Shown here: in pieces, positions 16,826-35,005 of the stretch
Numbering within the stretch: position 1 is the first letter of the stretch
Layout of the letters: each line of letters starts with the position of its first letter
NCBI RefSeq assembly: GCF_032062105.1
Contig: NW_026926125.1
Coordinates: 186,001-250,000 of the forward strand
Direction of reading: 5' to 3'
Source: Saccostrea cucullata
Lineage: Eukaryota
DNA: 64,000 nucleotides
Notes under the pieces: model-generated
What the model saw: the letters and a program-made list of their open reading frames with translations, nothing else
Database searches by the model: none
What the model was told of the DNA's origin: nothing
Made by a program: the position numbers and the translations under genes

Positions 16826-19800
16826 ATGTCGCACTATAACATTCTAGCAGAGTTTGAAAAATCATCAGACAGAACAGAAACTAGAGGATATTTTCGAGGA
16901 ATCTGGTCCAATGATACACCTGAAGAAGGTGACGAAGAAATTCAAAATGAGTTTATAAATGTTCAAGAAGAAAATTTGCAGAGAAGCAGTATCACTTTCC
17001 CAAACGAAGTGCACGAACAAAACGAGCTTGATCCGATGAGGATGACCCTCTCAAATGACATTGTCGGAGACTTTGAAGATAACTTCAAGTCAATAATTCC
17101 AAAAAGCTTGGATGCACAATCAGGCCTCATTTGGTCTGGAAATGTACAAAAATCTAGTTTGACTTCCAAAAACGAAATCAGTAATGAATCATTGATAAAG
17201 ACTCACTCAGATGATTTTGATTTCAAAAACGTTGAAAATAAAGACAAAAAGGAAATGGAAAAAAGAACAGCAAATAATGTTACGAAAAAGGAAGAGGATA
17301 AAAAGGCATTTATTCACTCTAAAAATCTAAGTAAACAGGCTTTTTCAGAAACGGAACTCCATCTACATGATTTTGAAACTGATGCTACTGATTATTTTGA
17401 CAGTGAAGACGAATATTTTGAAACATACAGAAACAACTTTGAGGACAGTCCGATGTTTACTTATCATGGAATGATTCATTCTCCTTTGTCAACATCAGCA
17501 GTAAATGGAAGATACAGTAAGATTATCTTCAACATGTAATTGATACTAATTATAAATAGTAATGCACTGACCAATCTTTTGTTGCAACTCGCTTTGTTTT
17601 ACAAAGTAGTATGCTTCGTCTAGTTATACTTTAAACATTTCGGAAATCTTAATCGTTAACTGCAGTATATCTTACATTGTATTTTTCACTTACCATGACC
17701 TTTTTTAAAACACATTGTGCCTCCTTCCTAACCATGTACAGTGGAATTGATTTGAACAAGTCTGAGCACCCTATGGACATACGTCTTTCATGATATTTTT
17801 TTTTTTTTAATTTAACCCATAACCGGATTTTAAAATAATATGAAGACATGTGTTATGATAAAATGGTGAGGTTACAAGGAGTGTAGGGAAGGAAAATTTC
17901 TTAGAGAAAATATGTTCTGAATGTTTTTAAGGTGAAGGCGTATCACGGTACAATAACATGCCAGTGTTTGTGACATCCTTACAGAGGTTTGCAAAAGCCA
18001 ATGGATTCACAGTTCATAACGTTATGGCAGATGGAAATTGTCTCTTCAGAGCTATCAATGATCAGCTTTCTGTGAACGGAATCTTTGGCAACTCCCCCGA
18101 ATCATTACGGAAAAACACTATCAAGTGCGTTATACAATGCTTCTCCTTTTTATCTATACCTGTATTAAACAATCCATAAAAAAATCGTCTATTTATGAGG
18201 GTTGTCTCAGAAATTAGATGCATCGATATCAGAGGACATTGTTGTGAAAATATAAATAATTCCAAACATTATGCAAAAAAATAAATTTGGAAGGGAGTTT
18301 ATGAGATGCGTTTATTTTTTCTTGGACAGCCACTGTGTTATTAAGTGAGAAAAAATTATTCAGTACAGATTACAAACCATTTTCTAAAGGTACGAATTCT
18401 CAAATAATATATTTAATAATTTTTTCTTCTTTTTATTGTAAGCAGTTATCTTCGGGAAAATCCTTACCAAGAGGATGGGTCACATACTGAGTCTTTCCTT
18501 TTCACTGAAAACTGGGAACAATACTTGTCGAGAATGGAACAAAGTACAGAATGGTGCGATCACGTCATATTTAAGGCTGCCGTTGACGCCTTGGGTCTAC
18601 GAGTTGTGGTTTTTAATGTTTATGGGGACGATATTAGACGAACAGAGGTTTTATCCAGAAAACAATCCGTTGACATCATAACCATTTATCTCGGTCACTT
18701 TGGAGAATTTCACTACCTTAGTTTAAGACCCAATAATTGGGAGTCGGAATGGCAAAACAGTTAAGAAAATAATTTATTCAGATTAGTGTTAGATAAACTC
18801 AAGGTTTCAATGCTTCACATTTTTGTGTAAGATCGAAGGCTTATAAGTTATAAATATTAAAAAATAAGTATGTTGTAAGACATTGTCAAGATTTTCAAAC
18901 GTTTTTTTTTCTTTTGTTTTGAAGATTTTCTTATATCCGCTTGTTTTTTGTATCTAGGATTCGTATTTTGAATCATTTTGAAATCTAAATATTTCATTTA
19001 AATTATTTTTGTAGAAGCTCTAATGTTTAGACACCAATTACCCATTAGACAATTTGAGAGTATGAAAATTCAAAGTGATGAGAAAAAAGGCGTAGAAAAC
19101 TGTCTCAAAATAACATCAAAATCTGACTTCGACACAGAAATACAAACTGACTGGAAAAGCTCAGAAAAGTTTGGATTCATAGTGTGTCCAGTTTATGGTT
19201 TGAAAGATCTAGATATGGAAGAAAATCAGGGTAGAATTAATATATATTTTTGAACAAAAAAGTGATTTCAAAGTTTAAAAAAACATCATTGCCATTTTTT
19301 TTTCACAAAACATAAAGGGCTAGCATGGTATGTTGTTAAGAATTCAGAAAAAAAAATTCCTTATATTTTTATACTTTTTTTTATTTTTTAGAATCGATGC
19401 ATCGTCTTATAGAGGATCCATTTTACATTGATACACGAACAGGACTTCCACTTCAACATTTATCGTATCTCATGAATCATTTGATTCCTCCTAGGATGAC
19501 TCTCGTTAATTCTCATGCACTTCCACCAGTAGAAAAGAATGGGACGATGTTTCAGTATTTAGGATCATTTGCTACAGGGACCTATGCATTCTTACAGGAT
19601 ATTCCTCTAGGCTACACGTCAAGAAATCATATTAAGAAACATGCCACAGTCGTTGCTTTAAGACCGCTTACGTCTGCAATTCTAATCGACACAAAAGACA
19701 TTCATCCAGGTTTCCTACGGTTAAAAGTTTTATCAATGTCGCATCTATTCCCAGAAAAAAGTTTACATAGATGTGAGAATGATGTTTTCCTAAAAAGATT

Positions 19801-21400
19801 AGATGTCCCTGATAATATGTCTTTACCCAAGATGTCAGAAAGATGTTATATTGGATTTTGTAGTGGTGAGTTTCCACTAGCTGCAGATGAGTGGCGAAAT
19901 AGACAAAGAAAATGGCCACCACACGAAGTAGTGACTGCTGTCTATAATGCCGGATGTACCTTAATTCCAAAACATCACCCAAAGAGTTGTAATCCAGAAA
20001 TCGAGTGGAAATTTAACTTCACAAACTCTGAAGTGTTACTGTTTTCAAAAGCTGTTACAGGCAAGCAACGTCGCGGATTTTTTCTTCTGCACATGCTTTT
20101 CGATAACAATACATGTCACTTTCGACGCAAATTAAAAATGAAACACACTAAGGCAGTTTTTTTTAACTGCTGTGAACAGATTCCTGTTGAAAAATGGGAA
20201 ACAAACTTAAGTGGGTGCATTCTTTATGCTACAGCATTTCTATTAGCTTGTCTTAGAGAAAGGAATCTGCCACATTATTTCATCCCATCGTTCAATTTAT
20301 TTGAGAACTACAAGGAGGAAGATCTTGAAATCATGTGTATTCAAATTGAGGCTATCCGGTTGTTTCCGGTTCAAACTTTACAATTTCTCACAGAAAGTTA
20401 TGGATACTCATACGGAGCAAACCTGTCAAGATTGGTTTTACAGGACTGTAAAAGATTTGCATCAAGTAGAGACATATTGTCAACTTATCATGATGTTTTC
20501 ATTCCTGGGACAATTAAAACAGTCAAATTTTTAACAAGACAAGGTTATTATAAAGCAGCTTATTTTCTTCTCCTTAATACTTATGTGTCACGTCTTTGCT
20601 TTACCTTAACAGACACTAGCGATTTTAATTGTAATTTCACAGAATTTTTCTGTCGTGCTCTCCATGAAATTCGCCAGGAAGCCTCTCGGACCATTTTGGC
20701 AAAAAAGTTTGAAAACGAACATGGTGTAAAAATACTGGATTCCGTAATGAAAGCAGGTGGTCTTTTCGTAGAGGATATTGTACCATGGGGGGTAAATTAC
20801 GAGATTGCTAAGCTTCATATACCAATGGAAAAAATGTCAAATTTCGAATCAATTGGAGATTTTTTTTACGAATATAGTAAAACTGAAGTAAAGAGATTTA
20901 ACAGTGATCTAGCTACGATAGGAATTTCGGAAGCAATTCGCTGTTTCGAAAGAGCTATTCAAGAGGGGCCAATGATTGATGTTGAAATAGATGACGAAGC
21001 TTTGATAAAAGAAATCCAGTCTCAAAGGTCTGAAATTATGAAAAAACTAAAAGAAAAATTGATGAATTGCTACATCCATACTATGAAAATTTCCCAAATG
21101 CACCGGACTTACCTGCCACTGGAAATATATATGCCTGCAATAGAAGAATTATGCCAAGAAATGCCAGATATAAGTGGAGTTGTCAGTATTATGTACCAAT
21201 ATTTGAATAATCCTAGTAAACAGAAGGAATATCAAACGCGTTTTGATAGTATCTTAGGGACAGGTAGGTAAAATTTTGAGCTTCGATTGCTCATCTTTGA
21301 AACATATTGTATCATGTATGTATTTTAATTCCATCTTCTCTATTCCTTTGTAGGTGAAGTGTACAAAGGACCATCAACATTGAAAACTAATAGATTTTAA
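16826..21400 (+). CDS. OTU deubiquitinase + Mab-21/cGAS-like pseudo-nucleotidyltransferase + helical tail, copy C, ~1110 aa (exons 16826-17516, 17932-18124, 18446-18759, 19015-19230, 19392-21263, 21354-21400)
   Basis: Exons join to 3333 nt in frame; OTU DGNCLFRA / GHFGEFHYLSL; Mab-21 motifs HPGFLRL, WRNRQRKWP, LIPK, EWKFNF..SE, CL...LPHYFIPSFNLF. Last exon (VYKGPS.LK) is conserved in copy B; an unspliced alternative would stop at 21271. Confidence 0.88.
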
Positions 21401-33800: not shown

Positions 33801-35005
33801 TTTTGGACGCAAACTTAAATAATGGAACTCGCCAAGATGACCAAGAAATATTGTCAAGCGATTTTGATGATTCTTGCACATTTTGCCTTTGACTTCAGTC
33901 CGACATATGTCATCACGATAGACGTTGAAGACGATGACTTCGAGGGAGAACAAATCAGCGACAGCCTGTAAAATGATATGATCGCTCCATTCACCAGACC
34001 TCGACATTCTTGTCAGATATTCCTCCCATGATTCCTCTGTTAAAAAGGAAGACAGGTGACCTTTGTCTTGATGGAAGGGATTCTGTCTTAGATACCTATG
34101 GATGTAAATATTTTTTTTTCTGTTGAATATCGAAATTGTGCACGTTCTTAGCAGCACAGCAAAGCATGTGCATGTATAACTGAATCGGTACGTTTCTTTT
34201 GTTAAACTACCCGTATATTATATAAATTGAATGTGCTTGGTTAAGCATGCTATCTGACTTTCATTCTGGAATATCAATTTCATTTTTTTTACAATAAACT
34301 TACTTTATTGCTGTGTGTCTCAGAGAGTCTATCGAATGCCCAAGACAGCCATTTATAAGCAATTGATCGGCAATAGCCCGAAACATACAGTTTCCATCGG
34401 AAATGACATCATATACATCAAAATCGTTGTCAGTTGCAAACTTCTGTATAGACCTTCGAAAGACTGGCATGTTGTGGTATTGTTCTACTCCCTGACCTAA
34501 AATAAATTCACAACAGAATAGGGAAAGGATTATATGCAATGATAAGTCATACAAAAGACCTTTTAGCAAGCAAATTCATTATCTGAGTTGGTTGGTGCAG
34601 ATGTATTGAATATATTTTAATCGCGTGATTTGAGTTAGAATTCTTAAGTTATATCGTACTATATCTTCCCACATCTCTGGTGCCTGAAGATGGAGAACCG
34701 TGTCCATTTTCAAATTCATCGAAATGGAAATCGTCTTCCGTTGTAAAGGTATGATTTTCCCAGTATTCGTCCTCGCTGTCGAAGTAATCGATTTTGTCGA
34801 TGTCTTCTCTTTTTTGTTCATCTGGATTCACATTTGACGCTGTGGAAAGTGTTTCGAAGTTTAATAACTTTTCCTTTAAACAGTTCTCGAAAACCACTTC
34901 TTCATTACCATCACACTCAGGCTGGTCTTCATTTCTCCACAACCCGCGAATAGGATGTTTCAGTGTTTCTTTCTCAATACATTGTGTAACATTTTGGGAA
35001 GACAT
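30895..35005 (-). CDS. OTU deubiquitinase + Mab-21/cGAS-like pseudo-nucleotidyltransferase + helical tail, copy D, ~1026 aa (exons 34660-35005, 34304-34496, 33776-34095, 33417-33686, 30895-32846)
   Basis: Exons join to 3081 nt in frame; DGNCMFRA, GHLGEFHYLSL; HPGYCRI, LIPKAHP, EWKFDFSLAE, CL...LSHYFIPSNNLF; intron phases match copy C. Confidence 0.88.

Follow-up and report, generated by a model that had tools for sequence, protein, structure and literature searches.

Introduction

Animal cGAS-like receptors (cGLRs) are defined by the active-site motif GS-X8-20-[DE]h[DE]h-X50-90-h[DE]h (Li et al., PMC9980059). Sp-cGLR1 (8gjy), Cv-cGLR1 (8gjw), and cGAS have the same two-lobed fold (Z 20–23) as a domain encoded by a gene family that we describe here from the oyster Saccostrea cucullata, in a window of 64,000 nucleotides (assembly GCF_032062105.1, contig NW_026926125.1, positions 186,001–250,000; coordinates below are those of the window unless a contig is named). 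Members of this family differ from animal cGLRs in lacking the catalytic acids and the GPA hairpin, in having a degenerate product pocket, and in carrying an N-terminal OTU domain, and they are sister to catalytically live bivalve cGLRs. The Mab-21 fold serves binding rather than synthesis, as is proposed here, in MiD49/51, MAB21L1, MB21D2, and the shrimp proteins LvMab21-1/2/3 (PMC12928593). None of these noncatalytic or nonsensing proteins has a protease domain, and the fused family is also set apart by a separate origin from bivalve cGLRs and by a long helical tail.

The closest OTU folds are of the OTUD1, OTUD3, and Otu2 type (Z 17.5–18.4), which share the D-G-N-C loop, the Trp, and the H-Y motif. 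Relative to these, the fused family does not have Asp, Asn, or Glu two residues after the catalytic His (His+2), has Asp or Asn seven residues before the catalytic Cys (Cys−7), and is partnered with a pseudo-nucleotidyltransferase (pseudo-NTase). A20 is a multidomain ubiquitin editor of innate signaling. In the A20 subfamily and in Legionella ceg23/LotB, the third residue of the triad is N-terminal of the Cys (PMC7396840), an order also proposed here; unlike A20, the fused OTU is OTUD-like in fold and has no A20 zinc fingers.

An initial annotation of positions 16826–35005 had proposed a new family of innate immune receptors in which an OTU deubiquitinase is joined to a cGLR domain, and knew of no characterized protein of this architecture. 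Likewise, we found no paper describing the pairing of OTU with cGAS/Mab-21 in a search that left most subscription journals outside, and OTU was not found in the accessible parts of the text and supplements of the cGLR census (Li et al., PMC9980059). The fused proteins are already in RefSeq and UniRef as “uncharacterized” or “OTU domain-containing”; what is new is their recognition and analysis. They have an undescribed ancient architecture of two known domains, one of which is inactivated. Because the census kept only intact active sites, a large group of dead members that carry an output domain of their own would have escaped it. This branch would be as old as bivalves and has expanded in farmed oysters; a single chain unites a cGAS fold with deubiquitination, two chemistries that are otherwise linked only by way of STING and separate regulators. 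The branch also allows a simple test of how a cGAS fold is used after losing catalysis. We favor, with a probability of roughly 0.55, a reading in which the protein is an active deubiquitinase near a membrane, with its partners selected, or its activity gated, by the dead cGAS-fold body and tail.

OTU and Mab-21 Domains Are Encoded in a Single Gene

Six-frame translation of the window, which has no N stretches, revealed four copies of one gene type (A, B, C, and D). Copies A and B are intact and diverged, as the initial annotation had them, but two more, a broken copy C and the 5′ part of copy D, lie outside the range it covered. Searches with the spliced model were made one exon at a time, and full-length analyses used database proteins (P0001 for folding and residues 810–1110 of P0185 for an Atlas look-up).

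Copy A is on the forward strand at 16826–21400, with six exons encoding 1,110 residues; its introns are all GT-AG with phases 1, 2, 1, 1, and 1, and exons 1–5 are free of stops. Exon 1 (16826–17516), which has RNA coverage, encodes an acidic and probably disordered N-terminus of 230 residues. Exons 2 (17932–18124) and 3 (18446–18759) encode the N- and C-terminal halves of the OTU domain, respectively. The former is matched by PF02338, has its junctions in RNA, and holds catalytic Cys267 (18039–18041) and Asn260 at Cys−7 (18018–18020); the latter holds the W-x-DH motif, catalytic His384 (18711–18713), and a Leu at His+2. Exon 4 (19015–19230) links the OTU domain to the Mab-21 fold, and both RNA junctions and the helical linker of an orthologue model bear it out. 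Exon 5 (19392–21263) encodes the pseudo-NTase/Mab-21 core (about 19394–20410) and an all-helical tail (about 20410–21263). A correction to the initial annotation is the short exon 6 (21354–21400), which has an RNA junction and supplies the final 15 codons and the stop. In the S. cucullata RefSeq protein of LOC134270865 (P0185, 1,110 residues), exons 1–5 are present letter for letter and in the same order, exon 1 being residues 1–230, and the C-terminus is that of exon 6.

RNA evidence was gathered for the copy A locus. All five junctions were seen as GT..AG joints in RNA runs of up to four studies (17516–17932, 18124–18446, 18759–19015, 19229–19391 [19229/30–19391/92], and 21261–21352). Coverage tracks the exons in four runs from four studies, and one contig spans exons 2–4 and has a remainder on the exon 5 side; the reads are 90–99% alike and thus represent alleles or close paralogues. 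Two single Logan contigs have intronless open reading frames (ORFs) of 1,327 and 1,734 residues, each with both domains. Transcripts that keep the OTU and Mab-21 exons apart would, according to the initial annotation, have refuted the fusion. Because exons 3–4 and 4–5 are joined in RNA and the Logan ORFs carry both domains, a reading as separate genes is largely refuted and was rejected. RefSeq models some loci as OTU only (P0190, and P0191, which is copy D), and given these models, short OTU-only isoforms may exist.

Copy B, on the reverse strand at 35005–30895, is an intact sequence-based model with open exons, GT-AG introns, and the phases 1, 2, 1, and 1 that it shares with copy A. Its exon 1 (35005–34660) is followed by OTU exons 2 (34496–34304; Cys at 34389–34387, Asp at Cys−7) and 3 (34095–33776; His at 33824–33822; Pfam OTU, E = 2e-7), by a linker exon 4 (33686–33417) that is open in phase and 82% identical to its duplicate in locus L034, and by exon 5 (32846–30895), encoding the core and helical tail. 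Identity between A and B is 55–56% in the OTU exons, 36% in exon 5, and ∼30% over the aligned part of exon 1. In both copies, the Pfam searches that the initial annotation had called for matched OTU to exons 2 and 3 (E = 2e-7 to 5e-3) and Mab-21_C to exon 5 (3e-14 and 1e-17), and the Mab-21 NTase model was below cut-off (8e-4) or absent.

The cGAS Fold Is Retained without Its Active Site

The large exon folds as a cGAS/Mab-21 domain. Its first 350 residues were modeled by AlphaFold at a predicted local distance difference test score (pLDDT) of 95, and the core of the model matches MB21D2 best (Z 23.5), followed by Sp-cGLR1 (22.9), Cv-cGLR1 (21.0), and cGAS (20.7), with root mean square deviations of 3.5–3.8 over 275–296 residues for the first three. 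Sequence similarity of the core to animal cGLRs is at E = 1e-14, and HHalign of the fused profile against live cGLRs has a probability of 100 over 301 columns that span the NTase core and the C-terminal helix bundle. The “Mab-21 signature” that had been read from the sequence does not include the catalytic motif.

In copy A, the GS is at 19562 and the three catalytic acids are replaced by His (19640), Thr (19646), and Arg (19841); copy B has GP for GS and Lys, Arg, and Val in the acid columns. Among 37 fused rows, 25 have no acid, nine have one, three have two, and none has three, compared with 23 of 23 outgroup cGLR rows with all three. The full acid motif is likewise absent from 16 further fused members, including that of Solemya, and replacements are not conserved among members. 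HHalign sets the SDxDxM of live cGLRs against a nonacidic strand of the fused clade, and in the same type of profile–profile alignment, a GPA hairpin that is near-invariant in live members is deleted. An active NTase hidden by a shifted alignment was considered and rejected, as the MAFFT and HHalign registers agree and the strands of the model fall at the same positions. Because neither copy and none of the OTU-fused relatives has the active-site motif, exon 5 is predicted to be incapable of making cyclic dinucleotides by known chemistry. Although its build is that of a cGLR, the active-site motif bars it from the class, and the proposal of a cGLR receptor in the defined sense fails. A single chain of OTU and cGAS/Mab-21 fold, and a gene family, are supported.

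The strongest alternative, although an unlikely one, is that the dead domain still binds dsRNA, dsDNA, or a nucleotide and thereby opens or closes the OTU. The fold is intact, the OTU and body are modeled as one unit, and MiD51 binds ADP without catalysis. Moreover, the fused clade keeps the GS glycine in 100% of members, the E383 equivalent in 86–90%, and the K414 and K439 equivalents in 62–78%. However, the positions that would contact base and product are not conserved: columns that we take to be those of cGAS R376, S378, and Y436 are 100% R, S, and Y in live cGLRs and scattered in the fused clade. In the model of the core, the helix before the GS strand has only ∼11 residues, whereas cGAS has a long ligand-binding spine helix. 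Copies A and B have cores of net positive charge (+7 and +12, respectively). Across the family, net charge ranges from −16 to +12 and is uninformative. Since product-binding residues vary and the spine helix is short, a conserved nucleotide ligand is doubtful for the fused clade, which weakens the earlier idea of a switch that senses nucleic acids or cyclic dinucleotides. A more novel version, a bivalve-wide receptor class in which the cGAS-derived domain binds a pathogen ligand and directly switches a deubiquitinase held at the endoplasmic reticulum (ER), with no synthesis of a second messenger, ranks below it and is rather doubtful; if true, it would short-cut the relay from cGLR through cyclic dinucleotide to STING.

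The Fused Family Is Ancient in Bivalves and Expanded in Oysters

Proteins with OTU and Mab-21_C are present in Saccostrea, Ostrea, Magallana, Pecten, Argopecten, Mizuhopecten, Ylistrum, Pinctada, Mytilus, Mya, Dreissena, Mactra, Mercenaria, Sinanodonta, Potamilus, and the protobranch Solemya. The M. gigas orthologue is UniRef A0A8W8KE68. No nonbivalve member was among the named hits of these nonexhaustive searches. With members in Pectinida, Mytilida, Pteriida, and Unionida, as well as Mya, Dreissena, Mactra, Mercenaria, and Solemya, an oddity confined to oysters is ruled out. In a tree of the Mab-21 core, one branch separates the 37 OTU-fused from the 23 catalytically intact rows with a support of 99 (Shimodaira–Hasegawa-like approximate likelihood ratio test) in what is a quick, midpoint-rooted tree with one outgroup type and no true outgroup. 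The nearest outgroup is live, helical-tailed bivalve cGLRs. As the tree needs a single change, repeated independent fusions were rejected, and the simplest reading of these sequences is one fusion no later than the base of Bivalvia. Near-identical ORFs of 985 residues at C200:7969–8250 and on ∼10 other contigs contain a related OTU (32% identity), which suggests a mobile element carrying an OTU and makes such an element a possible source of the fused one.

The large exon is found at ∼20 loci of the S. cucullata genome. Twenty regions were retrieved, and in almost every one the OTU exons precede it on the same strand; several of the loci are broken. Seven loci are in a 65-kb cluster on NW_026926125.1 that was shaped by a tandem duplication of ∼33.7 kb (contig ∼161000–224000; window positions 1–5530 match 33683–38122). 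Each unit has one broken and one A-type gene on the forward strand and one B-type gene on the reverse strand; the upstream A-type copy (L033) is frameshifted in OTU exon 3. Elsewhere, paralogue L039 (C2941:171500–177119) has an exon 1 with the FFAT-like motif described below and an exon 5 with one stop, and no OTU exons were detectable between the two. Scallop members P0026 (Argopecten) and P0029 (Pecten) have two Mab-21 modules behind one OTU, and P0013 (S. cucullata, C9716) looks like two adjacent genes merged by annotation.

Fused copies are under purifying selection, as judged from pairwise ratios of nonsynonymous to synonymous substitution (Ka/Ks) of 0.06–0.27 in the OTU exons and 0.19–0.37 in exon 5, several Ks values being near saturation. 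Positive selection was rejected because every pairwise Ka/Ks is below 1, with no region above it. These patterns bear on a second alternative, in which the dead domain mimics live bivalve cGLRs, either to catch pathogen inhibitors or to pair with live cGLRs as a dominant negative, and the OTU relays or damps the signal. We consider it quite unlikely. In its favor, the nearest outgroup of the fused clade is just such cGLRs, birth and death are rapid, and Ka/Ks peaks in the NTase N-lobe for most pairs (up to 0.61); the want of any region with a pairwise Ka/Ks above 1 argues against it.

The OTU Domain Keeps Its Catalytic Cys and His

A model of the S. echinata orthologue (890 residues; 82% identical in exon 5), with a pLDDT of 90, is consistent with, but no proof of, a single packed unit made up of OTU, core, and tail. 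The OTU domain of the model matches OTUD1 (Z 18.4), OTUD3 (17.8), and yeast Otu2 (17.5). Both copies and every complete relative in the alignment retain the catalytic Cys and His, the oxyanion loop, and the aromatic residue that holds Gly-Gly, and the Trp motif is kept as well. According to Schubert et al. (PMC7396840), the residue at His+2 can be dispensable, and the triad acid of A20-type OTUs and ceg23 is N-terminal of the Cys. In the fused relatives, Asp or Asn occupies Cys−7 (33 of 33) and Glu or Asp occupies His−2 (35 of 35), and both positions are candidates for the third triad residue. By analogy with the A20/ceg23 order, the Asp or Asn at Cys−7 is probably the third triad residue, possibly in a new arrangement for OTUs.

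A third alternative is that the protein acts outside immunity or on a substrate other than ubiquitin, as a housekeeping or developmental isopeptidase, or as a weak or dead OTU that binds ubiquitin. MAB21L proteins are developmental (PMC10732462), the family is conserved across all bivalve groups checked, no member has Asp or Asn at His+2, and some copies have an altered Cys loop (DGSC, DGAC, or DGDC). Against this, the Cys, His, and Trp hardly vary, constraint is strongest in the OTU exons, and lineage-specific tandem expansion would be more typical of genes in conflict. We regard this alternative as improbable and rank it after the decoy. That the protein is an active cGLR whose active site is unusual, or that misannotation has joined two genes, is exceedingly improbable: a few members keep one or two acids and RefSeq has the two OTU-only models, but junctions 3–4 and 4–5 are in RNA, single-contig ORFs hold both domains, and the full set of acids is missing from every fused member, with no conservation among the replacements.

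A Proposed Deubiquitinase Guided by a Dead cGAS Fold

The reading that we favor, an active deubiquitinase directed by a dead cGAS fold, has the OTU acting through Cys267 and His384, probably with the Asn or Asp at Cys−7 as third residue. The Mab-21 body and tail would pack on the OTU as one unit and serve as a protein-binding module that recruits a ubiquitylated substrate or gates the enzyme. Shrimp Mab21 proteins do not bind nucleic acids and activate IKK-epsilon by direct contact (PMC12928593), a precedent, by analogy, for a binding role of the dead domain. The likeliest setting would be the tuning of ubiquitin-dependent innate signaling of the STING/TBK1/IKK-epsilon type, with paralogues that differ in partner specificity. 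We infer the immune role from ancestry and from tandem birth, death, and copy-number expansion only.

The N-terminus would set the protein at a membrane. In the oyster clade, VAP would hold an FFAT-like motif at the ER, and in Solemya, scallop, clam, and unionid members, the candidate is a FYVE-like zinc finger. FFAT motifs, of consensus EFFDAxE, are bound by VAP proteins of the ER (PMC8306308). Copy A has DYFDSED (residues 189–195; 17390–17410, forward strand) behind its acidic tract, copy B has its motif at 34789–34769 (reverse strand), and DY[FY]DS[ED][DE] stands behind an acidic tract in every oyster-clade copy with a complete N-terminus; it is present at 15 loci of the S. cucullata genome and in O. 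edulis, M. gigas, and S. echinata. The motif is a conserved island within a divergent exon 1 and arises by chance in 0.2% of shuffled exons; it may be a tether to VAP at the ER. In the Solemya member, a FYVE domain scores above the Pfam cut-off, and the N-termini of scallop, clam, and unionid members are Cys-rich and similar to it. RRHHCR is the lipid-binding motif of FYVE domains and is missing from that of Solemya. Both kinds of N-terminus point to possible membrane targeting.

In the orthologue model, the tail is all-helical, as the initial annotation had it. Its likeness to tetratricopeptide repeats found no firm support: no such Pfam match was found at E = 2, and neither Pfam nor the Atlas gave anything firm. 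A structural match to an IFT-A chain (Z 9.1, root mean square deviation 6.1) is at the noise level for helical bundles, the tail having been folded within a larger model.

Several points weigh against an active, membrane-held deubiquitinase of innate signaling. The usual third triad residue is missing, with His+2 being L, V, T, I, S, or Y and never Asp, Asn, or Glu, and the role given to Cys−7 is a guess made without coordinates. The predicted template modeling score of the orthologue model (0.90) is not a direct measure of an interface. Four positions of the FFAT-like motif do not fit EFFDAxE, and only the oyster clade has the motif. Expression is low (61 reads in one raw run), and no immune-induction data were found for the family.

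Other Features of the Window

Copy C (9845–14190, forward strand) is a broken paralogue that lacks the 5′ end of exon 1 and has a stop in the remainder; its exon 5 is frameshifted with stops, and its OTU exons are still open. Just upstream of its truncated exon 1 is a frameshifted reverse transcriptase fragment of a long interspersed nuclear element (non–long terminal repeat type; 7143–8884, reverse strand). Copy D is a recent duplicate of copy B, with exons 1–3 at 1291–95 on the reverse strand and exons 4–5 upstream of the window (L034). Just upstream of copy A is the remnant of a B-type exon 5, from its 3′ end (16277–16492, reverse strand; 50% identity to residues 565–642 of exon 5 of copy B).

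A DIRS-like tyrosine recombinase retrotransposon lies between copies A and B at 22900–29724 on the forward strand, with ORFs for reverse transcriptase/RNase H (23262–25538) and recombinase (25205–26350). It has a 2.7-kb tandem repeat at 99.7% identity and perfect inverted repeats of 87 nucleotides, and is either a very recent insertion or an assembly duplication. A link to the fusion genes was rejected, as the element sits in the spacer between A and B and contributes no exon. At 39450–40630, two inverted arrays of a 21-nucleotide unit around the palindrome AGAGATATCTCT lie ∼600 nucleotides apart and are probably a miniature inverted-repeat transposable element or satellite-like element. Dispersed, degenerate repeats of 300–390 nucleotides are found at 4460–6470, 37040–38120, and 41350–43520, and an ORF at 62462–63112 (forward strand) has no Pfam match. 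Neighboring exons belong to a myeloid leukemia factor (MLF) gene (45334–46200, forward strand) and an AhpC/TSA-like gene of the PRXL2 type (58200–58448, reverse strand), and a tandem array of a 147-nucleotide unit occupies 46514–47506.

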